From NCBI GenBank assembly GCA_964057225.1, contig OZ059895.1, positions 8,556,001-8,620,000 on the forward strand: 64,000 bases of DNA, written 5' to 3'. The notes beneath the pieces are model-generated. The model saw only the letters and a program-made list of their open reading frames with translations, searched no databases and was not told the DNA's origin. Positions 10,010 through 63,446 of the stretch are shown here, one piece after another. The DNA comes from Auanema rhodensis. Taxonomy: Eukaryota > Animalia > Nematoda. Within the stretch, counting starts at the first letter, position 1. Every line of letters starts with the position of its first letter. The translations under genes were made by a program, and so were the position numbers.

Positions 10010-10058
<49 letters not shown>

Positions 10059-10339
10059 GAGAGAGAAATGAATACCCAAATTCTTAGTAATAGTTTAAGA
10101 GATTCATGTATAAAATATATAATTGCAGTTGTGCTGACGAAATAAACGTGAAATCTTACCTGATTCATGGTTGCAGGGAGTGATGTAGAAGCTCGTAAAG
10201 CCCTTGTACTCAAATGTCCATCTTTTTCTTCAACGATAGCATCGAATGGAACAGAGACAGAATGTGGTAAGATAGGTACTGGTATGTACACAGACGCCAA
10301 CTGAGCCGCTAAAAATCGACTGCCTCCCAAGGGATTCAT
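4776..10339 (-). CDS. Two-pore-domain (TWK/KCNK) potassium channel, multi-exon; stop at 5134 (unspliced tail) or 4776 (spliced long tail)
   Basis: Spliced exons give M1 ([25 protein letters not shown]), pore 1 ([17 protein letters not shown]|GYG), M2/M3, pore 2 ([14 protein letters not shown]|MTVGFGD), M4 ([14 protein letters not shown]) and a tail with [15 protein letters not shown]. The twk paralog cannot be identified. Confidence 0.92.
10014..10066. repeat. (GA)n microsatellite in the TWK first intron
   Basis: Read directly. Confidence 0.95.
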
Positions 10340-11920
10340 TGTCTAAAAACGTCTTCAAGTGATTTCAGAATGGAAATTGTTGTCTAATGCGTCTCTTTCT
10401 GTCAACTTGTCATCCAGAAAGTCTGAAAAGTAACAAACTAACGCATTTTTTTTAGGCATATGTTAAAAAATGAGCAAAAAAATAATTAACGCTCTGTATG
10501 TTCTTTAATGTCTATTACTAATCAAATTTAAAAAAAAAAGATTTGCACCCTAAAGGGAAATATCGACAATGCTAGAAGAACAAGTCTTGCCATCAGAATG
10601 GACTGAATCTTCTTATGAAAATTGGATGTACCCCCAAGGAGCTTAAGGGAACGCCACAGGCACGAAAAAATTGTATAACATAGAGAACAAATCTTTAAAT
10701 TTATAAAGAAAATACTGCATTAGTTAGCATGAGGGAAGGACAATATTTGGGTCTTACCAGGGCAAAACATCAGCAATCTTGTCCGGCTCACCAATCTGCA
10801 CATATTTCTTTATACTCGTGAGACGCAGGAAAACCTTTGAAATAGCAAATGGTTCACGAGGACAATTGCTATATTTGTAATTGTATTCATAAAAGAAAAA
10901 AATATTTATTATTTGATAATACTAAAGAATATTTAACCGAAATACTCATATCCGTTCCAAAGTTTAAATATATCAAAATAAACTTAAAAGTAGCTTTCGG
11001 AAAATAAGCCAACTTCAGATCTTCCAAACAAATCAATTACTTTCCTTTTCCTTTTTTATTTGTAAATGTGACAAAATATTTCTCAGGTAGCAATTCTTTG
11101 TTAACATCCCAATCATCAGCAAAAACTTAATGAGGTTATAAGACAAATGTTTACCACGTTCAGAATGAATGGACTAAATTTGGTGACAGTTTCATCAAAA
11201 ATATCACAAACTTGAAAACCAAGTTTTTTAATTATTAAAAAACTAAATTCTTGTTTATTTCAAACCATTTATATTTATAAATTTACAATATATTAAGTTA
11301 AATATAAATCCAAAGTTAATCAATATCATATTATTAATTGAATACAACCGCTTGCAACAACCTTTCGCGCCAAATAAGGTTACATTTAAACTGATTTATT
11401 TTGTTTTTTTTTAAGAAATTGTCATTTCTTTTTAATTTCAAGTATATAATATAGTATTTACTTAATATTTTCTGTTTCAGATTTAACTTACTAAACAATA
11501 AACAACACTTATCAGAAGACTTAGAACAACTCGAAGGAAAAGCAACTATAAATAAGGTATGTCTTATAAATATTTCAAACAAATTAAAAAAATTGCAACT
11601 TTTAAAATGAGAAGTCAGATGTATATGAAACAGATTTTATGCTGCTTCATTACATTTGCCGATAGCGAGCAATTTGCTTTAATGTAAATCGGTGTTTCGG
11701 CCATATTGATCATTGGAGCATAAATTTTGCTAACTGTTTAAACCTACTTGAAATATCCAGATATCTATATTGATTTGAGAGTTTTTTCTGGATTGAATAT
11801 TAACTGTTTAGCAGTAGAATATTATGAGAAAAACATATGTTAATGTATTCTTTATTATAATTATTAGTCTTATTATCTTTATTAGTTATTAATATTAAGT
11901 TTTTGAATGGCTTGTGCTTG

Positions 11921-12948
11921 CTATCCAACAAGTGTTGGGTTTGCTCTATTAGAAACAAGTTGATCTACAACTTCATCTGTGTTGATTTGTGGAAGATTAA
12001 CATTCGGTAAAATGTGTGCAAAATTCATATCTATGTCATTGAATCGTTCATAGAAATGACTCTGAAAGAAAAAAAATGTTGAAACGGTGTGATTGAATTA
12101 TTGTTTTACCTTGAATGGCATGTGGGTATCAGTACCGGGAATCGGAAAAGAGAGTCTAGAATGGAAAATATCCACGGCTTCTTCATCGTGCTTACGTAAA
12201 ACTTCTGTTTGAAAGTCAAACATCTACGAAGATTTTGATTATCTTTTTGTTTGCTTTATCAATACTAACCTCATTTAATCCTGGTATAGGTATATCTAAA
12301 GCCACAGCTGAACTGTCGAATTTCGAACCATCTACTTCTGCTCCCACAATGAAAGAATTCTAAAACTCAGAGTCTTTTCTAATTAATAGTTTCAAGTAAA
12401 AACTTGAAAAGGCTGATGCTGTCCATCTGTGTATAAATGTGGCATTCGAGCATATTGTCTGTAGTGTCGTTTTAAGTCAAGCCCTATAATCTCACAGTGT
12501 ATATATTCAATTATCGTCATGAAATTACCCAAGAAGTTCACTCCTTGAATGGCATATCCGACTCCCCATGAATCACCATAATCATTATTAGAAGCTACTC
12601 CTACCATGTGTGTAAATGGATTTAGTTGAGCATGTCCAGAAAAATGTTTGTCTTGACCCGGCAGTGAAACATCAGGTATTGCTTGTGTCTACTTTAAGAC
12701 GGCTTTAATATACGTATAATATATAAGAATACCTTATGATATAGTTTATTTCCTGCTATATACAGATTATGTAAATATGGTCCAGAACGATGATCAGAAA
12801 CTCCAAAAGGTAATCGAATAAGACCGATTCCTCGTGGTCGAGCACAATAGAATGGAGCTAATTAAAGAGTTTCATTATGTTTTTAACTTAAAATCAACTT
12901 ACTAAGGAAAGACAGGAATACGAGGCTGGATAGCCTTGCAGAGGCCAT
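11921..12948 (-). CDS. Secreted protein of unknown function (signal peptide)
   Basis: Multi-exon frame MASARLSSLVFLSFLTPFYCARPRG...LNPFTHMVG...GDSWGVGYAIQGVNFLG...NRANPTLVG* with short GT-AG introns and a hydrophobic N-terminus. Confidence 0.75.
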
Positions 12949-13827
12949 TAAAGCATGTTATGGTCTAATACTTATCTGCAAACTGTAGATAGATGTACGA
13001 AACTCTACAAACTTTTTAGGAAGATTTCAATAAGAACGATTTTTAAAATAGACGGTTGAATGAAAGGGAAGAATTGAGGCCGAATGATGAAAGTGAATTT
13101 TATCATTGTTGGAGCTGGGTATCCCTTCGGACGAAAAAGAAAATGCGCACGTCCGCAACCGGGAAACTGATAATCACTGAATCATCATTTTCACAGACAA
13201 GCAGTTGAATATATGGCTGAATATGTTGTTGAACCCACGACCAATTTGTATGTGACCCACGGATACATCGTAAGAAATAGTCATTATGATCCAGAAAAAA
13301 GCAGGTCCTATGAACTAGTATGTGCGCTGTTGGATGTCAATTTTTTTTTTCGAAACAGAAAAAAAGTAAAGAAAGTTCAACAATCATTAATATTGAGTTC
13401 AAATTGTTCTATCATATTTTACTAGCCCCAAATCTGTTTGATGGAATAACTTTGTGACAGATATAAGATATATTGTATAAGAAAAGTGGTACAGGTAACC
13501 TTATGTTTATCCCTAATAAATCGCGTTGAAACAGAATCAGCCATCTAGGAGAGATGTTGATCATTTGTATTCAGTGATACATTGGACCGACGTTTGACTA
13601 TAATCTTGATTCGAATAAGAAATGATGTTCAAGTAAAATTAAGGTCGATAGACATCCTAGCTTCAGCGGAAATGAAACTGATGTCGATTGAATGTTTGAG
13701 ATTTTCCTCGAATCAATATTTAAAACGCGCGTTCGAATATAAGAGTTGTGGGAAATTTGAGGTTTAAACAAAACTAAATATCTAATTGTTTATATGTTAT
13801 AGGTAATATTATTCTATATAAGGAATA

Positions 13828-16800
13828 ATGATTAGAGTAAGTCAAGTTTCAATGTTACTCATGTTTGAATGCTTAATTTGTAGCAAACTGACGCTGCAAC
13901 ATCATCTATTAATACAGAGGATGGACATTTCGTTTGGAAAAAAAGACCGAAGTATGATATCCTCATATTTTTAAAGTTTTATCTCATTTAAATCTCAGAG
14001 GATTTGGTTTACGAAGAAATCTAAAAGTCAGCCGAGCTCATGCACCTAAGCCTGTAACAGAACAGCCTGAATCGGTATTTCAGGAACAATTCTTAGTTTT
14101 TTAATATTTTTTCCATATAGAAATCCCTATGTGTTATTCAAAAACCTGTTCGATCGACACCTCTTCAAGATAATGTAGGTTGTGTAATCTAATTGTCTCT
14201 AAAGAAATATAACTTCAAGATTTATGATGTACAAAGGAATTTCAAAGCGAGTGAGCTATATACTTACGAATTTATTGCTGTCATTAGTTCATGGAAAGGA
14301 GCCTTGTATAAAAAAAGATTTCAAATAGTTTTTGATCTTTTGCTGGATACACTACCGCAGCCAGAAGTTGTGCGTGATAGAATCAATTATAAGATTATAG
14401 CAACTCGTTGATTACAGGCAATGATGCTCTGTATTTTTGATTTAGCATCAAAGCAATATCAAGATCTTGGCTCTTTCTATATGTTCATGGGTTTTGAAAT
14501 TAGGCATTCAGATATAAAAGATCCAATATGTTTACCTTATAGGTATGTAATTAAAGAAAAAGAATTATAATTTATTGAATTTTAGGCCAATTGATAATGT
14601 TGATATTCACAGTTTATTAGAAGAAATTAAAGTCATGAAATCAAGCTTTTTAGGATTAAATGATATTACTCATAATGAAGTTCATTAAAAGTAAATGTAT
14701 GAGAAATAATTATATATTTTAGTTTACTATTGATATTTGTTTTGTAAAACAATTATTAGGAAGTGGAGTATCTGAAGTAGCTAAAGTTTCTCGGAAGAAA
14801 AAGGCAACTTCTAAGGATGTCATAGCGGAAAATAATGGTTTTCATGAAATTCATAACTTTATTCCATTATTTCCTTTCAGTAAAAAAGTTTTGTTTGGGA
14901 ACAGCAGTCCTGCAGGGAATGGCACTTGTTAAACATAATAATGATATTGATAACTATGAAATTGAGAAAGAATGGTACAGACTTTCAATTTTAAATGATA
15001 CATCTGCAGAATATAAGGTAATATATTATTCTTTCTTTTTCCTTTTTACATAAATAGATATAGTCAGATATTGCTGTTGCAAAACAATTATTGTTAGACT
15101 CTGGTATTAATAAAGAAGAAGATTTTACTATTAAAGATGTGTCAGCTGTTCAGGTTTGAAACTGAGATGCTTATTATTCATAAAAGTTACTAAAGGACTT
15201 CCTAAGTGGACAATATCAAATTGTTGTATTCAGTGAAGGTCATAACAAATCTCCGATTTATAAAGGACCTAGTTTAATGGAAAAAAATGTTATTGGTATT
15301 ATTTCTAAATGATTTCACGAATTTAAAAATTTAATATTACAGCACTTGTATGTCAAAATGGCCACTATGAACTAATTAAGAAACTGCCACAGTTCGTTGG
15401 AGCTGGATTTTACTGCGTTCACTGTAACGTCAAAAGCTCCTCATTATCAGATCATTATAGGTAAAACTTTAATTGAATAAGTTGTAATTAAGAATTGTTT
15501 CAGTTGTCCTTTACGTTGTCGATTATGTTCATCAATGAACTGTGTCCCTGAAGATAGCATTGAAATTACATGTGAAGAATGTAAACAAACTTTTTATAGT
15601 GAGCAATGTTTTAAAACTCATAAAATGAAAGGTATTATTGTTTATATTATTATTTAAATTCAAAACATATTGCTTTTCAGGTATTCTTGGAAAGAAATCA
15701 CGTTGTGAAAAAACAATTTTCTGTCCTAATTGTCAAAAATTATGCAAAGATATGAAGAGACACAAATGTCACAACTATTATTGTCAGCATTGTAAAGTAA
15801 TTTTTCTATTTTATCTTCCAAATATTATGTTTATGTTCTTAGGTTGTAAGGGAAAAGGGCCATCAATGCAGTTTACCTCCTAAGGAATATGGTGCTGCTT
15901 GGGGATATCCTCAAAAGCGAATATTTTTTCTTGTGAAAGTAAAGCTTTACAATAGACAATTTAAACAAAACATATACTATGTTTCAGTCTGAAAAAATTT
16001 TCAAACCTGACGGTACTTTTATCGAAAAGCCTATGCTGATTTTGGCTATTCGTTTTTGTCCTGAATGTAGGGCCTACTTACCTTCAAGAGTAGTTAAAGT
16101 AAAGGAAATATTGAAAATGATATTCATTGAAATTTTGATTAGGGTGCTCAAATGACTTGCAATAACTGTTCACCAGATGGCTGTCGAACATGGATTTTCG
16201 AGCGTGTATTTAAAGGAAATAGAAACAAGGATGTAGTTCTGGAATTTCTTCAATGGCTTATCAATAAAAATCATTATCGTTTTGCTGCCGTATCACATAA
16301 TTTAACTCAGTTATCTTAATTTGTATTTTTCTTTGTATATTTTCTATTCATTTAGGGGTGTCAGTGATTTAATCATGCAATATTTAACCCGTGAAGATGT
16401 ACCAAAAACGAAAGAATGCATTGTTGAGAATGGACGTTTAAAATATATTGTAATTGAGGGATCTCGGGTTAGTTCAAATTATGTTTTATTATTATCAATT
16501 GATGATTTTAAGCAAAAAATTTGCGATGCTGATCAATTCATCCCAGCAGATATTAGGAAGTTCTCAAGAGCTCTTGGACTATCTCTCAATGATCAAGGGT
16601 ATGTACAGACAAATTTTTGCTTTAACTTTAAATTTTTGTCCAGATATTTTCCTGAAAATTTTATTACCACAGCAAATGTGAGTTACATTGGACCTCATCC
16701 TGCACTTAAGGAATATATTACTGATGATATGTCGGAAGATGATGTGAAATATGTGAAGGAATTCCACGATTCAGAACTAAAAAAAGGAGAAATATTCAAC

Positions 16801-19502
16801 TTTCAAGATTCATTAATTAAGTATTCATCTTTATTTATAAGAAATTTGTTATCACATGAACTTCATTTTAGGCATTCTTACTTAGAACTTGTTCAAATGT
16901 CATTATGTTTCATGACTGTTGAATCTATTATTTATAATCAATTAGGTGTTCGACTGTTTGAGGAAAGTTCTAATATGTATAGAGCAGCTATTTGTGGATT
17001 CAGAAGGTACGTACGTCAATATTAGAAACTTGTAATTTTTTCAATTCAGAAAGTTTCATACTGATAATTCTCTTCCATTAGACAAAGGACAAGGTGCTGC
17101 TTTTCGTCAAACTTTCTCTATGACAGCTATGAAATATTTATCTTGGAGAGCTCATGTGGAACAAATACCAATTGACACAGCAGTAAATGTGGGAGAATAC
17201 AGAGTATGCTTACAACCAAACAGTTGGCATGTGCATTTCATTGAATATAGGTACCTGGTACTCCATTTCATCTTGACGGTTTCATACAGCCATGCGAGAA
17301 ATATCCGAGGGGCTTAGGAATTGATGTTAAGGTATCTAATCGAAAACTATTAAAGTTCATCAACTTTCCTAGGGTTGCTACTGGCATGCTCACGGTTGTA
17401 CCTATGTGCCTCAAATGGTAGCCAGGAGAGAGCTTAAAATTGATACAATTCGTGCCAACGATAAAAAACGTGATGATGAAATTAGGTTAATTCAAATTTT
17501 AAAAAATTTTATTTTGCTTTTTTTATTTTTAGACGTCATATTGACTTAGAAATAGTGTGGGAATGTCAAATTGCTTTACAACGTATGACAGATACAGATA
17601 TGGATAATTACATGAATAAATGCAATTTTGAAGTTTTTTTTAAGTGCATGAATTATTTATTTACAAATTTAATTTCAAGGGAAAAGCTGATATTAATAAT
17701 GCAATCATGCCATTATTTTGTGAAACATTTCATTTAAATTATAGAAAAACGTATGATTATGATAAAATCCATTGCCGAGACATCGTAGAGTAAGTTGGAA
17801 CATTAGGATACTTCTGAGCAACATTATCATATAGTGTACCAGCTATATGCATGAAACTTGATCCTTATCCTAAAGGACCTTTCCGACGAGTACATGGAGA
17901 GTTATTCCAAGTTCCAATTGAAAAACCTGATGATCTTCATCAAGCAACAGGCCTTCTATACTGTGTTGTTAGTTCATATTGAAAATAATGAATACATCTT
18001 GTGTAGGTACTTCCACCGAGTCATATGTTCATGCCATTACTTCAATATAAGCTAGATGATAATGCCATTCTTACTCTCTGCCGAAGTATGATGTTATACA
18101 ACTTAAAATCTAAAATTACTTTTTTGCTTTAAGCATGTACGGAACAGAAAAATTATTCTGAGTGCAAGCATACTGACGCTGAAAGAATGTTTTCGGGCAC
18201 ATGGTCCACGTTTGAACTTAAACTTGCTTTAGAACATGGATATAAGATCGTCAAAGTTATAGGAGTAATAACAATATTTCTTTATTTCATTCCCTTAATA
18301 TTTAATTTTTAGGCTATTCACTGGAACGAATGGACAAAATTTTCAATCGATTCTAATGGAAAACAAACTTCAGGAATTTTTTCTGATCTTGTTGATGCTG
18401 TACTCGGAAATAAGATTGTGATTCTAACCATCTTCCTCATCTTCTTTCAAACATTTTTCTAGGCTTCGGCTGGATATCCTGAGGGAATGAATTCGGATAT
18501 GGAACATGAAAAGTATATAACTGAGATGACAACAAGATATGCTATGCCAATCGGCAAAGATATAGTCAATAAAAATATTTATGCTCAAAAGATGGATGAT
18601 GCTCTCTTAAGAATTGTATTTGTTTATTTTTATTTATTAGTTTATTAATATTATAATATTTAGTGGAAAACTTTTTCTGAGAAAAGTGATGTACCTGTTT
18701 GTGAAATTGCTCGATCATCATCAGATTTATGGAAAATTTTAGAAGATCCAACGTTATTGGTGAAGGAAATTAAAGTATTCATTCTAATTTTTCCCTCTTA
18801 AACTTTAATTTCATAGGCTGTTAACGATGAATCTGCCTATTTTTGTTATGGCAAAAAGAAAGAAAATGCCATTCCTTTGTTTGAGACGGTGACATTGGTT
18901 GAAGCTTTGACTGCTTCACATTCAAGATGTAGAATTTTCCGATTCATTCAAAATTTGGAAAATTTAGAAAGAGATCTGTTTTACATTGGTTTGTTTTAAT
19001 TAAGTTTTAAACTATTTTCTACTATATTATAGATGAAAAACACATTATTTACCGTAGTAATGAAGATAATGACCCATTATTTGATTTGACTCCTGAATAT
19101 CCTAAATCTACACCTAAGGATGATATAATTGAATTCTTATCTCCAAGTGCTGGATGTTACCTCTTGTCTCGCTCATCCGAAAACAGCATTACAAATGCTT
19201 TACAGGTTATACTGATTCCTGACTTCTGAATTGTTTTTAATTTTCAGGTCGTCGGCTTCTCAAAGATTGAGGCGGCATGTGATATTCAAATTCAAGCCGT
19301 GCGAGATCAAGTCGCAATGTTATTAGAAAACCAATGTGACTCGGTAGATATTTCTTATGAACACATCGAACGAGATTCTTTCTATCTTCTCAAAAATGTG
19401 ATTAAGACTAAACGTCTTGAAAGCAGACTTGCATCCAGATATATAAAGATAGGTGAAGATGATTCTGTGCAAACATGGCCAATTGGTACAGCTTGTGCAT
19501 GA
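13828..19502 (+). CDS. Intron-rich Polinton/Maverick-derived protein-primed DNA polymerase B homolog (roughly 1350-1400 aa); polymerase and exonuclease motifs degenerate, VSR-like nuclease retained
   Basis: One open frame through about 34 short introns. Polinton pPolB landmarks appear in order: OTU-like FCL...GHYELIK, Cys/His zinc cluster, SHN, GYFPENF..N..YIGPHP, FNFQ, GEYRV...LDGF...GCYWH...WEC, YPKG, LCRTC...CKHTDAER..GTW...EL..AL..GYKI, K.AS.GYP, and C-terminal TWPIG. Confidence 0.9.
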
Positions 19503-19720
19503 TTTGTTGTTCATTCATATATATTCAAAAACGTTTATTTTATGTTTTTCAATTATTTTTAATTTTATGTACAAATTGTTCCAATAGTAGTAGCTAGCAA
19601 TCGATACGACTTACAAATTTACAGAAACTAACTGCAATTTGAAAATAATTCTTATTTTTTGTACATAATCGTATATACATAATGTAACCAATGAAAGTTA
19701 TTATTATTATTGATTACTCT

Positions 19721-21633
19721 TTAAATTTTACTAATTGGAACTTCTTCAGCTATCAATAATTCTCTATCCCAATCGGGCATTTGAGCGGGAGTTCCCAGGA
19801 ATTTCGCGAAAAATGCGATAGTTTTTACCCAAGTTAATTCTTGACTGCGGGCATGTAAAACTACTTCACCTCCATAACCACAGTAGAAACCTTAAACGAT
19901 TGTTGAAGAACTGTTACTGTAAAGATAGATTGATTACCTTGATATTTGGCATAAACTATATCATGATGAGGGAAATATGGTGGCTCCATGATATGTCCTC
20001 CGTTGACGATGTCAACTTCAAGGTTGTGGTGGCCCGTTTCTCTAAGCTGACGCATCTTTGCATGACTTGCGAAAATGGAATTGTTAACGAGATCATCTGC
20101 TGATGCTATGAATCGGTATGCTACATCCTTGGCTACACGGTCAAATGGAATTATAGTTTCGGGAGACGGCTTCAATGTCATCAATATACGATCAGTTACC
20201 AGTATTCCATTGATAAAATGAATTTTAGAATCATCTAATCTGTAGAAAAAATGTTATTCATAGTATAAGGTATGCTATCACTTACTCAGCTTCTTTAAGC
20301 GGAACACCGTTTTCGAGCAGTGTAATGTAACGGTTTTGAAGATAGGGTCCGTTGATTGATACTACAGCTTTAATCTGCAAGATAAATATGAAATAAGACT
20401 TTACGAATTAGAAAAGTACCTGTGGGCAACGTGTAGAAATAATATCTACAAGAGTGGCTCCAAAAGATACTCCTTGAATTCCTATGAAGTTGCCGGTATA
20501 AGGTCTACTAACCAACCATTCAATTGCTTTCTGAATTTCAATGCAATTAATTGAAGCATTGGAATGTGATATTTACTGTAAAATATTGGAGATCAACTTC
20601 CTCTAATTTGTTTGGGAGATCTTTGAATTGGAAAAATGCCAAACTAAACACAACAAAACCTTCAGATGCCAACATTGAACCTTTGTGTTCATGTAAACCA
20701 CCTCCAGTACCCGAAATATCTAAGACTGTTGGATAAGGTCCATCACCTAAAACATTGAATAATTTAAAAATAACTGTGTTTTGCATTGTTTTACCTTGAG
20801 GCTTAAACAAAGTTCCATGAACTCCATCGACACTTATTTCTTCTCTGATTAAAGATGGATGCATCCAATGTTTTTTGATCAATAGAGTGTCAAGAAGTCG
20901 ATCTCCAATATCGTAAAGTCTAAGATTATTCCAATCGGTTAATGCATATCAATGAATAATATTTCCTACTGAAGCTTATAGATAAAAGGAATTGGTGGAG
21001 TACAGCGTAGATAGCCACCAAAATCAAATTCCGGAGTTGGTCTTTGGCTCATGAAAAGACCCATTGCGTCAGCCTCTGGAATACCAAAAATGATTTTTAG
21101 ACTTCAGATTAATTTACAGAGTTGTAAATTTTTTTGTTGTTAAATATCATTTATACTATAGATCGTAAATGTTTTTGATTTTGCTGCACAGTCAAAGCAT
21201 ACCGTTATAAGTTCCTCGAATTGGAGTGTTGGTTGGAACATCAATTTCTCCTGCGGCGTCAGCTTTATATGAAGCATATGCAGCATGTCCTCCATATTTA
21301 TGTTTCAATCTAAATTTTGAAAATGTTTCTTTATACTGTTGAAATATTATGTTAAGCGTTAAGCGATATAGTAATAGATAAAATGTGCAGTTGATATAAT
21401 GTGACTTTGATTCATAAGGATTTTTCTTGTGATAAGAAGAAAATGAAGCAATATGCAAAGATTGCAAATCAAATGACATTATAACGAAGTAAGCTACATC
21501 AATGCGTGAGGTTAATTTACAACTAGGCTCACCTCATGACCATTTTGTACGGTTCAAATGGTTTCAAATTTTTAGCTTTGATGTGAACGCGCTCGCGTTG
21601 CATGGTATCGGGTTTGTCGATCCACAGCGACAT
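19721..21633 (-). CDS. Acyl-CoA thioesterase / BAAT-family alpha/beta hydrolase ending in SKI (PTS1-like)
   Basis: Family motifs ADAAGEID, DISGTGGGLHEHKGSMLASEGF, nucleophile GVSFG and catalytic-His region GGHIMEPPYFP. The last exon ends EEVPISKI*. Confidence 0.92.
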
Positions 21634-32153: not shown

Positions 32154-34123
32154 ATGGAAATTATTATGTTTTTTGGAGCATTCTTCAGTATATTTCGACT
32201 GATAGAAGGCTCGGATTGTGGAAATATTGAATCAGAAGCAATAGTAGAACGTTTGATGGCAAATTATAGCAGGTAAAACGCAATAAAACTTAAAGTAAAA
32301 TCACTTTCGGATTATCTAGATCTGAAATTCCTGAACCATGGCCCGTCCCAGTTCAAGTAGAAGTTACCGTACAAGATGTTATGGAGTTATCTGTTCTAAG
32401 TAATAGTTTCTCGGCAGATATATGGTTCAGGTTCAGATTTAATTCATTGAGAATATATAAGAACTGTTCGTCTTAAGCTCTATTTGGCATGATCCACGTT
32501 TAGCATTTTCTCATCTAGATAATTGTCGTAAAAATTTATCTTTTGATGATAAATTTGAAAATGTTAGTTTATAAGATATCTTATAGTTTTTTTATTTTTT
32601 AATATTCATCATATCTTTATATCAGGTATTATGGTCACCTAATGTTTGTATTGTTAATACAAAATCAACTGAAGTTCATATGTCACCTAAACCTAATGTG
32701 CTTTTAATGATTTTACCGAATGGGACTGTTTGGCTGAATTATAGAGTTAAAGTACAGTCACCATGTGCTATGAATCTAGCAAGATTTCCAATTGATCAAC
32801 AAGTATGTTCATTGGTTAGTTATTATTATTATTTATTATTTATTATAATATTTATTAAGGTGTTTGAAAGTTATTCATATAATACAGCAACAGTAAGAGT
32901 TGATTGGATGCCAAATCCTGTTACAGTTCTTAATGAGTTATCTCTTCCTGATTTTGATTTATTATCTTTACAAACATTTAAACACACAGAAGTATAATAT
33001 CATGTTCAACAGATTATTTCATGAGCACATCCGTTTCCAGGAATACAAAGCTGGTCAGTGGTATAGATTGACTGTAGAATTTCGTTTCAGAAGACGTTAC
33101 GGTTTCTATATCCTACAGGTTCATAAAGATCTTTTTTTATTGTTGAAAATGAACTTACACCTCTTTCAGATGTATTTTCCAACTTATATTTCAGTCTTCA
33201 TTTCGTGGATAGCCTTCTGTATCGATACTAAAGCTTTGCCAGCTCGGATTGTGCTTGGAGTTAATTCGTTGATGTCATTGACATTTCAGGTAAAATAAAA
33301 ATTAAAAACCAAATGCATTATTTCTCGTATAGTTTGGAAATATTATCCGTTCATTACCTCCAGTATCATATATTAAAGCTATTGATATATGGATGTTTAC
33401 TTGTGTAGCATTTATATTCGCTTCTTTAGTAGAACTGGCATATGTTGCTTATCAGGTTAGTCAATCAGCTTAAAAACTGTTTTCAACTGTGTTTCGACGA
33501 GTATCACTCTAATTTTTATTTTGAGCTAAAATGACAAACATTTAGTTGCGTGACATATTCAATGTTAGATAGCTTTGATAACTAATTTTCCTTGAAAATT
33601 TTCTAAATTCATTTCCAAGGTTAAAACATAATTACGTCATACTAGAATAAAACTATTTTAATTAATTTACCAATAGGATAAGAAACTCATTCTGCGAACA
33701 AGCAAGTGGAATCCAACTTTTAATGCTGTCTTACACTTTCTTAGAACATTTGATCCACTGGCTGAAACGGCTCATGTAGCTAATGAAGTACCTGAAGTAT
33801 TTATAATTGTTGTAACAAGTAATTGAAGTAAAGTTGTATAGGCTCCTCCACCAAGACAATCTTATTTCGAGGATGAAGAAGAAACTTACCTAGAAGATGA
33901 ATTAGCTCAACATCGTCAACGGATGTATCTTCGACGCAAAAATAGTCTTTTAGATTTTGGAAGCAGAGTTGATCGTATATCTTTTATAGCTTTTCCTTTA
34001 GTAAGTTCCAATAACTTTTAAATAAATATAGAATTTGTCATATTTCAGTGTTTCTTCGTTTTCAATGTAGTATACTGGAGTTACTTTCTTCAAGATGAAA
34101 CCCCTATTTCTACTACGTCATGA
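32154..34123 (+). CDS. Cys-loop ligand-gated anion channel subunit (ACC/LGC chloride channel type)
   Basis: Signal peptide, Cys loop [16 protein letters not shown]1 [23 protein letters not shown], anion-selective PAR before M2 ([21 protein letters not shown]), M3 YIKAIDIW and M4 [10 protein letters not shown]. Confidence 0.93.
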
Positions 34124-38570: not shown

Positions 38571-41500
38571 ATGCAGCAAGATGCTTCATTGTCTGGGAAG
38601 ACGTGTTCTCTCGTCAGAGAATGTTTTTTACCTCCATCCCACTTAAATATAAACAATGGATTAGGCGATATAAAAGTGTTAAATATAAATTCTAGGTTAG
38701 ATCTCTATTTGGTTTATATGTACAATAATTTAATTTAGAACGGCTTTTTATTCTGAGCTCAGAAATGTTTCTACACAAGGAGCTACCTGCTTGAAAGAAT
38801 GTTGTAGGAAGTATTTAGTCTTGTAATCTTCATCTCTTCAAAGTATTTCTTTAGACAATCTTATGGCGATATGCAGTATTTAACAAGGGGAACTAGTTCT
38901 GTAAATTTTAACATATTAGAAACTTCATTAGCTGGATTTTTCTTAAGGTTAATTCATATGAGCGGCCTGAAATGGATTATCAAAATTCGATGGAATTTTT
39001 GCTAAACACTGAGAATATGAACCAGTTTTATGATTATCGGACTATCGAGATTAACCCGGTTACTGGAAGGAAAACTATCTATGAAGATAGCTATAATAGT
39101 TCTGGTGTACCAGTGCAATATTCTTATATCTCTTACGCACCTATTGTGGATCCAAATAATGACATAACGAAGAAAAATGAAAGTTCTTATGTTCAATCTC
39201 AAAAGAGTTCTGTTCCAAAATGTAGTACTGTTGTCGCTGCTCCTCTTCGTCTTGAACAGATTAAAACTCTTAGCAATAAGCAGACTGAGCCGAGCACCTC
39301 TACTCCTGTTCTTAAAGAATCTGAAACTGCTCCAGCTAGTGTCTCAGCTAGTGCTTCAGCTAATGTTCCAGCTAGTGTCTCAACTAGTGCTCCAACTAGT
39401 GCTCCAACTAGTGCTCCAACTAGTGCTCCAACTAGTGCTCCAACTAGTGCTCCAACTAGTGCTCTAGTTAGTGATCCAGTTAGTACCATTTCTGAGAGCG
39501 GTCATGCGCGTAGAAAATCTGGACGTGGACGTAGGAAATCTGGACGTGGTCGCCCTGCAAAGAAATATGAACCAGCTGTTTTGGCAGAAAGTACCTTAAT
39601 TGATCAGGCTGTTCAATCTCCTGCACCTATTGAAGAGAAAAATAATTCTGATATACATAACAAAACTCCTGGTAATAATTACTAGGTTTTAATTTACACA
39701 CATTTCTGTTTACAGAGGGTAATACATCTAGAATTCCTTCGAAATATTCCAAAATACTGGTATTATTTGATATACCTTTACAGTTAAATTTTTTTTATAG
39801 GGAACTGGAAACAATGATGCTAGACTTCTATTTCAGACTCCTATGTCTGCTGTAAGTTTTGTGTAACTTATAGTTGATGTGTTTATGTTTAGGTAAATTC
39901 CGATAATGAATGTTCAGATCTTGGGTTCACTAGAGGAACTTCAGTTCCTGCTTTGGTATATGAGTACTGCTGTGTCTTTTTTATAATCATTTTAGGATTT
40001 GGATACACCGAAAAATTTTTCAAATAGTTCTTCACGGATACCAGCTAAATACCGGAATGCGCTAATAGGGGTTGAAGAATTGTTTCATACAAATCATAAC
40101 AAAAATAATTTAGTCTTTTAAAGAAAAGTTTAACGACAGCATCGCATCAATCGAATCTGGAGGAACAAATGCACTAGAAGAGTCATGCAATGAAACCTGT
40201 AAAAGTGATAGTGTTTTTTTTTCCGATGAAAATTCTGAAGTTTGTTTTAATATTGAGAAAGAATAAGATCATTTCTCGTTTAGGATCGCAATGATGATAG
40301 CCGATTGGATTTGAGTAGCGTATATCAAACACCTGTTGTAGATTTTGTATGAATTTATAATTTTATTCTCCTAATTTCAGAAGCAGGATTTAACTTCTTT
40401 GGATGCCACATTCACTGACGGTACCATAGCAGCGGTTTGATAATATAATTAACTAAGTGTACTAAAGCTGCTTCTAGACACCTAATGAAGAATTCTTCAC
40501 TCCTTCTTGTGACGATATAATACAAACTGGCAGTCAACCAAGAAGCCGAAGAAGGCGACGAAGACCTCTGGTAATCAGAAAAAGTCGGAAGAAGTCATAT
40601 GCTCCGCCTGAATATCATTTACCTAAAGTTCGTTGTTATTTTATTTTTTATCGTTCATGTTTTCTTTAGACATTTATTCGAGAAGCGTATGATCTTCAAA
40701 TTCCCGCCGCAACTCTAATTGAATCTAGTGGTAACTTCTTAAGCGAAGAATCTATTCAGGATGATTTGATTGCCCGGGCTAAATATTTGGTATGATATTA
40801 TCAAATTAAGTAAAGTTATAATAAGAATAGGATACAACTGAAATAACAAAGTCTGGTGGAGTTGTGTGGATAAATCTTGGTTTACAGTTCAAAATGGAAG
40901 CTTTATATAGGTTTTTTCCTAATAAAGGAGGTTTTCCTTACTACTGTTTTATAGAGCACCTTATCCTCCTCGTTTTGCACTACTTAATGAGCTTTATGTT
41001 TGTCGGACATGTTTCAGCTATTACGCTACAGCCCAAGCTTTGACCAGTCATATGGTTTTTTTGGAAATGTTATTGTTTTAATTAAGCTTTTTTTAGGAGA
41101 GATGTGTTTTCCAAACAATGCCCCCAGGAACCGAAATTTATCGGGATACTGTCAATCATCTTTCAATATTTGAAGTCCGAGGAGATGATCAGCAAGTTAG
41201 TGTTATTGAATTTTAACTTATGACCATCGATTTTAAGTTGTATTGCTCAAATCTGTCGATGTTAACGATGCTTTGGCTACGAGACAAGGTAGTATACTTA
41301 GATGTTCAACCATTCTCTTACTTTGTTCTTGCGACTCCTAATGCAGATGGTCATTTTCTACCTCTAGGCTATTTTAGTAAAGTAGTTAAATTTTCTTCCA
41401 ACTGATTCAATTAATATTTTTTTCAAGCAAAGAGTAAATGGAGAGAATCATAACTTATGCTGTTTTTGCATTCTTCCATGTTTCCAAAAACGTGGATTTG

Positions 41501-57967: not shown

Positions 57968-58041
<74 letters not shown>
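57949..58041. repeat. Compound (TA)n-(GA)n microsatellite
   Basis: Read directly. Confidence 0.95.
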
Positions 58042-58864
58042 AGCCAAGTAATATAAGAGTACATTGTGAGGGAAATAATTATTATTTCTTTCACAATCTA
58101 CCTACATACATGCTTATATATATATTTAGAAACATACTAGAATACTATCAAATAGAAAGGATTTTTCAATATAAATTTATATATTCTTATTAAGATATAA
58201 TGAAGTTTTTAATCCAAAGAAGTAAAAAATATTAAAAAATTTCTTCAAAATTTGCCGATAATGAAGATGACTTGTTGAAGTTTGAGTTTGAATAATACAA
58301 GCTTCTTGTTCAAAAAAGAAGAAGAAGAAGAATTCAAAAGCTTTAGTAGAATAGAATAGGAACGAACGAACGAACACAAAGATTAGAACAAGTATATGAA
58401 TGAAAAGATAAAAAATTAAAAAAAAGTGAAAAAAACAACAAAAAAAGGGAATATAAGAGATAGAGAGGGAGTATAGAATGATGAGAGTGTAGACATGAAG
58501 ACGAAGACAGGAAGAGAGGCAGGAAAGGGAAACTAATTGAACGACTTTCATCATTTAAACGAGAAATTCATATAATCATCTTAACTTCTCAACAGAATTA
58601 CTGTTAACGGAAACGATATTTCTGATATTTTTCATTTTTCATGAAAAAAATTGATAAGATACAGATGTAGTTGTTCATTTCAGAAAGAAAAATATCAAAG
58701 AAAATGAAATTTTTGAATGACGAAGGCAAATTTTCCTAAAATACGAAACGTTTTCAGAAAATTGTAGTCGTTTGAAATATGATAAATGCTATATTTATCA
58801 GAAAAAAAATAATATTTAAGATATGAACGTGTTAAGAAAATGTTTCGAAAAGTCTATTTCTCCC

Positions 58865-58866
<2 letters not shown>

Positions 58867-58949
<83 letters not shown>
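58867..58949. repeat. (CT)n microsatellite
   Basis: Read directly. Confidence 0.95.
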
Positions 58950-58951
<2 letters not shown>

Positions 58952-60249
58952 TTCTTTCTTTCTCAATATTCCCATTAATTTCAATAAATTTATTTATCAA
59001 TTTGGAAAAAAATTTTCTTATTTTCAAGCTGAATATGCTGAAAATGAAGAAATTGGATATCATGAGAACTGATCTTAGTTGCAACTTTAGTACATTAATC
59101 TAGTTATCTGTGAATGAATTTGCTTGATTACATTTATAGTTTCATAACTATGCTTAACTATATATACATATAAGTATAATAAGATAATTAATATAATTAA
59201 CAAGACAAGTATGTTTTAAAGTATAAAAGACAGGTTTTCAATTTTATTTTATAAAAATTTAATAGAAATGTCCCCTGATGATTAAGAACATCTAGATATT
59301 CTCCGGAAAAATATTGTGGAGGACAAGCAGCGGTATTACTCAGTTTTAGTCGAGATTCAGAATAATGTGACAAATTTGTTAGAACACCCGATGAACGCCA
59401 TTTGGAAAAGTTCTTCCACTCTGTGAAAATAGAGGGAAACGCGATATTAGCACAGAATAACTAGTGAAAATAAGAATTAAACACTGGAAACATGGAGGAT
59501 AACGGGATGAGAATCAGGGAAAGAGAGGGAGAAAGAGGTGTGAGGAAAGAGAGAGAAGCATAGATTGAGAAGATGTTGGATGTGCGTGTGAGTAGATGGA
59601 AACAGGAGAGCATCCCGTGCCTTTGGGGCTAATTGGCTCAAGTTTACGATGGGTGTCATCCAATTCTGGATTATATGCATCCGTCTTGTTGGCTGTTACA
59701 GAGCAAAAAAATGCTGAGGATGAGCTTCCATACCTAAGAAGAACGATCTCAGGTAACAACTCAGCTGGCTATTCATTCAATGAACTTTGAGAAAAAATGT
59801 TTTCCACAAGCCCAGAAATTACTATAATGCAACTTGTTTTAAGATATTAGATAGGATTCACTAACTCATTAAAGTTTTTTTGCTTCTAAATATAGAAAAA
59901 AGAAGGAACTTGTTGAAGGAGAAACACATTTTTTTTTGGACTTTTTCGTAATGTTGAATCAAATGTCGACATAGGAGGCATGAGATCCACAAAAAAATTG
60001 AAAACGACACAAGTTCAATAGTGAAAAAAGAAAAAAAAGAAAGTGAATGAAGTAGATGTACGCATTAATTCACGTCTGAAGCCGACGTGTCCTTCCGTAG
60101 TTGCCTAGAGCATCAGTTTTTCCATGTCTTAACTATTCTTATTGAAGCTAGCTTGTCAACGACACCACCAACACAGATAGACATATACACATATAGATGT
60201 ATGTATATAACTATACTAACATTCTTATATAGGGAAAATTCTAAAAGAA

Positions 60250-60255
60250 AGAGAG

Positions 60256-60300
<45 letters not shown>
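60250..60300. repeat. Imperfect (GA)n microsatellite
   Basis: Read directly. Confidence 0.9.
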
Positions 60301-60301
<1 letters not shown>

Positions 60302-63357: not shown

Positions 63358-63369
63358 AGAGAGAGAGAA

Positions 63370-63442
<73 letters not shown>
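63358..63442. repeat. (GA)n microsatellite
   Basis: Read directly. Confidence 0.95.

Positions 63443-63446
<4 letters not shown>

Follow-up and report, generated by a model that had tools for sequence, protein, structure and literature searches.

A probable domesticated and catalytically inactivated Polinton polymerase in the genome of the nematode Auanema rhodensis

Many host genes go back to transposases or integrases, and others to capsid or envelope proteins. In the full-text literature that we searched, whose coverage is incomplete, we found no report of the replicative polymerase of a Polinton/Maverick element being kept as a host gene, nor of a catalytically dead one. We describe here a gene found in a 64-kb stretch of the Auanema rhodensis genome (contig OZ059895.1; the whole stretch is called "the window" below, and positions refer to it). 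This gene, at 13828..19502 on the plus strand, is a host gene derived from a protein-primed DNA polymerase of family B (pPolB) and of the Polinton type; it has 35 exons and 34 introns and codes for a protein of 1374 aa. We consider it very probable that it is a domesticated and catalytically inactivated Polinton polymerase, maintained as a single-copy host gene in a nematode lineage to which Auanema sp. JU1783 also belongs. A preliminary description, made from the letters of the window, had proposed domestication; the predicted loss of the catalytic centres is a point that it had missed.

The pPolBs of polintons are built of a terminal-protein domain, followed by a viral-type OTU (vOTU) domain and then by the polymerase (PMC11161782). 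Within pPolB2, a VSR insert has been reported for a subgroup found in molluscs and in a single marine nematode, and for no other nematode pPolB2 (PMC10748475, Jeong et al. 2023). VSR-bearing pPolBs (P0014, P0099 and P0154, among others in our searches) are the closest counterparts of the Auanema protein, with which they share the order of domains: OTU-like domain, zinc cluster, exonuclease, VSR insert, palm with a Cys-rich insert, and thumb. Their genes are uninterrupted open reading frames (ORFs) in compact multi-gene elements or multi-ORF contigs, and their catalytic columns are intact, whereas the Auanema gene is intron-rich and syntenic and has lost most of these columns. The active relative P0056, for example, is encoded by a single uninterrupted ORF of 4,089 nt lying among small ORFs on a metagenome contig of 17.8 kb; L002 (1-14877), a metagenome stretch that carries P0056, is a polinton-like element with ten small ORFs for which Pfam gives almost no annotation.

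Other described systems can be compared with it as well. Among cellular proteins, inactive family B polymerase modules are represented by eukaryotic Pol epsilon, in its C-terminal half, and by the inactive archaeal PolB paralogues; there too the PolB fold is kept as a structural or binding module after catalysis has been lost, but these proteins are of cellular replicative origin and have no OTU or VSR modules, whereas the Auanema gene comes from a protein-primed viral polymerase. Polymerisation has also been given up, with the module retained, in the fusions of an inactivated pPolB to a superfamily 1 helicase found in polinton-like viruses and transpovirons (PMC5499653; PMC11161782); those fusions belong to mobile or viral genomes and have lost the exonuclease and gained a helicase, whereas the Auanema gene is cellular and has the whole polymerase-exonuclease fold. 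The ancient Mavericks of placental mammals are likewise old Maverick polymerase sequences recognised by orthology and synteny (PMC9683012), but they are degraded fossils with several element genes side by side, whereas the Auanema gene is single, intact and under purifying selection. As for nematodes, the survey of their Polintons (PMC10748475) asked for five genes of the element inside 20 kb, for terminal repeats, and for matches 650 aa long or longer, and because of these filters, it would miss a solo gene split by introns.

The descent of the gene was established by homology. On the plus strand, 13828-19502 appears as dozens of short open stretches in alternating frames, and we used the longest stop-free one (16306-17022, 239 aa, comprising four exons and three in-frame introns) as a query against 1.8 billion representative proteins. 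Only P0001 (1381 aa, E 1.6e-46) came out as a strong relative, next to 37 weak ones; of the nine weak relatives that we inspected, eight are polinton-type polymerases, complete or in part, and one (P0018) is an unrelated leucine-rich-repeat protein. P0001 is the JU1783 orthologue of the window gene and served as its proxy in library searches, while the window protein itself was compared directly by BLAST and MAFFT. By BLASTP, P0001 aligns colinearly with P0014 (1377 aa, positive for the Pfam polymerase family PF03175) over about 1,000 residues with an E-value of 3e-55, and the window protein aligns with P0154, P0107 and P0099 over 1,100-1,280 residues with E-values of 3e-93 to 2e-84. Matches to family members from a firefly, oysters and a sea cucumber range from 3e-93 to about 1e-80, with 23-25% identity over 1,100-1,280 residues; the matches with a named source come from bivalves, insects and one echinoderm. 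Taken over the whole set, the alignments (E 3e-55 to 3e-93, about 1,000-1,280 residues) span both the exonuclease and the polymerase regions, and for the window protein, colinearity with the relatives starts near aa 137-168. A profile of the family, compared with the PDB, finds phi29 DNA polymerase with an E-value of 2.5e-6 and E. coli Vsr with one of 2e-5; a match to OTU1 (3BY4, E 0.19) is weak.

The coding sequence of 4125 nt runs from an ATG at 13828 to a stop codon at 19500-19502. A spliced alignment of P0001 to the window delimits 33 GT-AG introns, and a 47-nt first intron placed after a first exon of only 9 nt brings the total to 34, all GT-AG, with sizes of 39-57 nt (median 45.5). The preliminary description had announced a continuous frame once about 34 host-sized introns are removed, and this is what we find: the spliced frame contains no stop and no frameshift, like that of the JU1783 orthologue, against 75 and 168 stops in the other two sense frames and 80-88 in the antisense frames. 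Keeping any one of 31 of the 34 introns would introduce a stop or shift the frame. The introns are poorer in GC than the exons (22.5% vs 34.7%) and their acceptors are T-rich like those of the neighbouring genes; their density, one per about 120 nt, is that of host genes, and the GC content at third codon positions (GC3) is host-like as well (0.237 vs about 0.25 in neighbouring genes). The surrounding window is AT-rich animal DNA (31.5% GC) with very short introns. Two ab initio models were tried and set aside: a self-trained splicing model that over-spliced the gene into 57 introns, and a minimum-intron model that returned an unrealistic path of 25 introns. Both were replaced by the relative-guided alignment, which was checked against the model of the JU1783 depositors. 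That the gene is spliced and expressed in this way is what we infer from the sequence, with the independent two-isoform model of the JU1783 depositors as its sole support. Two alternative GT donors are separated by nine bases (18256..18264, plus strand), in line with the two isoforms of JU1783 and the 3 aa that set them apart; this suggests that alternative splicing at this donor pair is conserved between the species.

The orthologue of Auanema sp. JU1783 is represented by P0001 (CAI4223160.1, 1381 aa) and its isoform P0158 (CAI4223161.1, 1384 aa), and its identity to the window protein is 72.7%. Its depositors' model, with 36 exons and 35 GT-AG introns, was reproduced exactly. Comparison of the two genes shows that 33 of the 34 window introns occupy the same alignment column and phase in JU1783, the remaining one lying within six columns of its counterpart; JU1783 has one more intron, which splits a 137-nt exon into 68 + 69 nt. 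On the JU1783 locus (L001), this extra intron lies at 11111-11149; the depositors' model also has an intron of unusual length (13963-14140, 178 nt) and another that is unusually short (14279-14307, 29 nt), the latter adding four residues relative to the window protein and perhaps reflecting an annotation compromise. Homology searches among billions of proteins, run with P0001 or with the 239-aa stretch, returned no further orthologue or fragment; in these searches, JU1783 was the one source of a close relative.

The two genes also sit at the same place. On L001, a potassium-channel/RRM gene is followed by one for 235 aa (minus strand), by the polymerase-like gene (plus strand) and by a BAAT thioesterase (minus strand); next come a gene for 250 aa, one for a GPN-type ATP-binding protein, an Ariadne ligase and a Nop/Prp31 gene. 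This order of eight genes is fully conserved between window positions 4800-30000 and L001 1-25804 (25.8 kb), even though synonymous divergence has reached saturation, and the orthologues therefore share a syntenic locus outside any element; the window and L001 differ in GC content (31.5% and 37.4%). A mobile Polinton/Maverick would show terminal inverted repeats, with genes for an integrase, a packaging ATPase, a protease and a capsid next to its polymerase, and would as a rule exist in several copies; none of these hallmarks was seen at the locus. No terminal inverted repeats flank the gene, the matches obtained being chance matches of AT-rich DNA; no second copy was found in the 64-kb window; and none of 15 companion ORFs, taken from two contigs bearing an active relative, matched anything in the window, while the neighbours are conserved host genes. 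The statements of the preliminary description that companion element genes and terminal inverted repeats are missing thus held, and so did its view of the gene as a domesticated one: the orthologue in JU1783 is syntenic and adjoins the thioesterase, introns are shared, the gene is single in the 64 kb, and it is, as shown below, under purifying selection.

Between the two species, the whole gene has a pN of 0.177 and a pS of 0.805, that is, a pN/pS of 0.22; as pS is beyond saturation, this ratio is an upper bound for dN/dS, and it is far from the value near 1 that the preliminary description had named as refuting domestication. Among the neighbours, for which the few stop-containing alignment segments were skipped, the adjacent thioesterase gives 0.23 and four other genes give 0.06-0.11. 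One has to keep in mind how far the two sequences have diverged: the interiors of orthologous introns are 50% identical, against 51% for non-orthologous pairs. Since the intron interiors are no more alike than random pairs and pS is saturated, neutral sequence has been randomised while a frame of 4.1 kb stayed open. An intact frame and purifying selection over so long a divergence are what one expects of a domesticated gene. Constraint varies along the protein, being strongest in the VSR module (0.09), the zinc cluster (0.11) and the OTU-like domain (0.13), intermediate in the N-terminal region (0.22), the exonuclease (0.23) and the palm-fingers (0.27), and weakest at the C-terminus (0.44).

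The catalytic centres of the polymerase and the exonuclease look dead. The window protein and its orthologue P0001 were set against 73 active, full-length relatives of the family, among which 127 alignment columns are conserved at 95% or more. The zinc cluster keeps 20/20 of these columns, the OTU domain 2/2 and the VSR module 8/10; the exonuclease keeps only 6-7/25, the palm-fingers 29/58 and the thumb 5-7/10. Within the exonuclease, Exo I retains 0/2 and Exo III 0/4 conserved columns, the acidic and aromatic invariants being gone; the Asp column of Exo II is not kept either, a case which is ambiguous as an Asp sits two residues away. Within the polymerase, motif A keeps 2/7, motif B 2/7, motif C 2/5 and the Lys-Tyr motif 1/3, with the same pattern in both species. 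Agreement between the two species extends to 107 of the 127 columns; because of it, the replacements must be old and have since been conserved. Profile searches go the same way. The preliminary description had suggested Pfam as one of the checks on the spliced protein, and Pfam no longer recognises the polymerase: PF03175 has no match at E <=0.1 in the full-length orthologue P0001 and none at E <=1 in any exon of the window gene, while P0014 and P0011 score 113 and 196 bits. The PHROG polymerase profile phrog_1907 does not match P0001 either, unlike P0014, and scanning the gene exon by exon with Pfam found no polymerase, OTU or VSR family. With Pfam silent on the exons and on the full-length orthologue, it is by homology to the relatives alone that one can recognise the exonuclease and the palm. 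The domain order given in the preliminary description is real nevertheless, being colinear with these relatives and supported by the published pPolB architecture and by the VSR subgroup. Predicted from conserved columns, the protein would no longer synthesise or proofread DNA; with both active sites largely gone, the new host function would therefore be something other than DNA synthesis.

The modules can be laid out along the plus strand, with approximate boundaries on the protein. The N-terminal region (aa 1-225, 13828..14821), 75% identical to JU1783, holds the place of the terminal protein in polinton pPolBs; by analogy with the family architecture (PMC11161782), which is the basis of this assignment, it may correspond to that domain. 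It is followed by a putative vOTU-like cysteine-protease domain (aa 226-360, 14822..15404), whose Cys and His columns, 100% conserved in the 73 relatives, are retained in both the window protein and P0001; the fold is taken from the literature (PMC11161782), in keeping with the weak match to OTU1. The Cys/His zinc cluster comes next (aa 361-480, 15405..15902), complete for its conserved columns in both species, and its exons give weak zinc-finger and zinc-ribbon matches in Pfam. The 3'-5' exonuclease-derived module, predicted inactive, spans aa 481-760 (15903..17065). The VSR-like endonuclease insert (aa 761-900, 17066..17620) is the most conserved part of the protein and includes a stretch of 50 aa that is 100% identical to JU1783. 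P0001 gives a weak direct match to the E. coli Vsr mismatch endonuclease (1VSR, 1CW0, 1ODG), the Cys/His-rich core included, with an E-value of only 0.02; its matches to Vsr models are all weak too (NCBIfam TIGR00632, E 0.007; PHROG 13076, E 4e-4; PADLOC Vsr, E 0.002), and in the Auanema protein, as opposed to the E. coli enzyme, the VSR domain is embedded in 1374 aa. The palm and fingers-derived module, including its Cys-rich insert, extends over aa 901-1260 (17621..19115) and is also predicted to be inactive. The thumb or C-terminal region (aa 1261-1374, 19116..19499), with 54% identity, is the least constrained part.

On its upstream side, the gene is divergent from a host gene on the minus strand (11924..12948) with a hydrophobic N-terminus, whose JU1783 orthologue of 235 aa has no Pfam family; downstream, it converges with the BAAT/acyl-CoA thioesterase (19721..21633, minus strand; Pfam PF08840 and PF04775), which has its orthologue at the same place in L001. 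The distances of about 880 and 220 bp given in the preliminary description proved accurate, with 879 bp to the start of the divergent gene at 12948 and 218 bp to the stop codon of the thioesterase (19721-19723). The intergenic region common to the divergent pair (12949..13827) contains two short blocks conserved with JU1783, 13076-13100 and 13167-13180, which correspond to L001 9610-9635 and 9688-9701 and are colinear despite the randomised intron interiors; the second block has a GATA-like core. These blocks may act in the regulation of one of the divergent genes or of the two together. Between the two convergent stops, a 21-nt block (19599-19619; L001 15993-16013) with 90% identity (E 5e-5) may be a shared 3' end signal. 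Farther away in the window, we noted an exon of a Cys-loop ligand-gated ion channel (32900-33298, Pfam Neur_chan_memb), a 237-aa ORF (38972-39685) containing a 12/36-nt tandem repeat, with about 11 copies of the 12-nt unit, that codes for a low-complexity PT-like repeat protein, and a stretch at 60-62 kb with only 21% GC. There are many (AG)n/(CT)n microsatellites, at 1789-1839, 2558-2614, 10014-10066, 57971-58041, 58859-58964, 60246-60301 and 63358-63446.

Could the gene be something else than a dead polymerase turned host gene? Short exons and the instability of the first ab initio splice searches would be expected if a permissive gene model had lent an intact look to a decaying endogenous viral fossil or to part of a mobile element. 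This explanation is close to refuted: a frame of 1374 codons stays open next to frames with 75-168 stops, the independent JU1783 annotation has the same 33 introns, pN/pS is 0.22 with neutral sites randomised, and no flanking repeats, companion genes or extra copies turned up in the window. It is also most improbable that the protein is a still active, unusual protein-primed polymerase. Motif A still has its Asp, motif C its first Asp, and colinearity is intact over the whole fold, but most columns invariant in the 73 active members have been replaced, and polymerase profiles no longer match. These two Asp residues do weigh against our interpretation, and so do several other points. The two JU1783 isoforms are predictions of their depositors, splicing and expression being read from sequence; with only two species, dS is saturated, and pN/pS does not come from a proper codon model. 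Loss of catalysis is deduced from conserved columns, with the neighbouring Asp near the Exo II column. The OTU assignment draws on two columns, a weak PDB match and the literature. Every Vsr profile match lies far under the curated cut-offs (16.7 bits for TIGR00632, where the cut-off is 97.85), and two of the ten conserved VSR columns differ; VSR competence is putative, and so is an equivalent of E. coli Vsr's upstream catalytic Asp.

If the gene is indeed a domesticated and inactivated polymerase, several functions for its host may be considered. A polymerase-dead copy that still has its terminal-protein-like, OTU and DNA-binding parts could, when expressed by the host, serve as a decoy or dominant-negative defence, occupying the ends or the partners of incoming Polinton-type elements and blocking their protein-primed replication. 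Such a role would suit an entire fold kept under purifying selection, dead exonuclease, palm and N-terminal region included (pN/pS 0.22-0.27), that is, an architecture preserved while catalysis was lost; exapted viral genes restricting their relatives are a known pattern (PMC9683012), and Polintons do occur in nematodes (PMC10748475). We nevertheless hold it to be unlikely. Constraint is evenly spread, at a housekeeping level that matches the thioesterase's, and without the fast evolution typical of antiviral genes, which argues against a gene engaged in an arms race; it peaks in the VSR, zinc and OTU modules, for which a pure decoy would have no use; and no Polinton of the VSR type is known in this lineage, the type being reported only from a marine nematode and molluscs. 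A part in programmed DNA elimination, in which the VSR-type nuclease, mounted on a DNA-binding scaffold, would contribute to the developmental breakage of chromosomes described for Auanema and other Rhabditidae and the gene would provide Auanema-type nematodes with a DNA-cutting or end-processing activity or with an essential partner of it, seems very unlikely. Auanema species do eliminate DNA in a programmed way, their break sites bear sequence motifs, and the literature that we found names no nuclease; the gene, which stems from a mobile element and is restricted to its lineage, has a VSR-like nuclease domain, and a domesticated transposase is reported to have this role in ciliates. The process is, however, widespread in Rhabditidae, including Oscheius and Mesorhabditis, and among the billions of proteins searched a close relative of the gene was found only in JU1783; so restricted a distribution argues against a conserved role in elimination. 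There is no direct link of any kind between the gene and the process. Vsr-type enzymes nick at mismatches and are not known to cut both strands, which counts against such a role as well.

Our preferred reading, that of a domesticated and inactivated Polinton polymerase, implies the following course of events. After its capture, the gene gained about 34 host-type introns; most of the invariant residues of the exonuclease and polymerase centres were lost before the split of the two species, since which purifying selection has acted along the whole length of the protein. For its present activity, we put forward, tentatively and with somewhat less than even confidence, that the protein acts on DNA through its intact and most constrained modules, namely the VSR-type, zinc-bound nicking endonuclease, the Cys/His zinc cluster and the OTU-like cysteine protease or deubiquitinase, the inactive exonuclease-palm-thumb fold holding the DNA as a scaffold. 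Genome maintenance and the control of invading DNA would then be natural candidates for the biological process concerned.

The gene places a pPolB lineage of the VSR type, a type reported before only from a marine nematode and molluscs, in the history of a rhabditid nematode. It offers a clean record of intron gain, as its active relatives are uninterrupted and 33 of its introns are older than the separation of two species between which neutral sites have reached saturation, and it exposes a blind spot of surveys that require long matches or complete elements. A role in DNA elimination, if true, would make it a metazoan counterpart of the domesticated transposases that rearrange ciliate genomes. 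More generally, if our interpretation is right, Polintons can give animal genomes a large multi-domain protein whose value to the host lies outside polymerisation.

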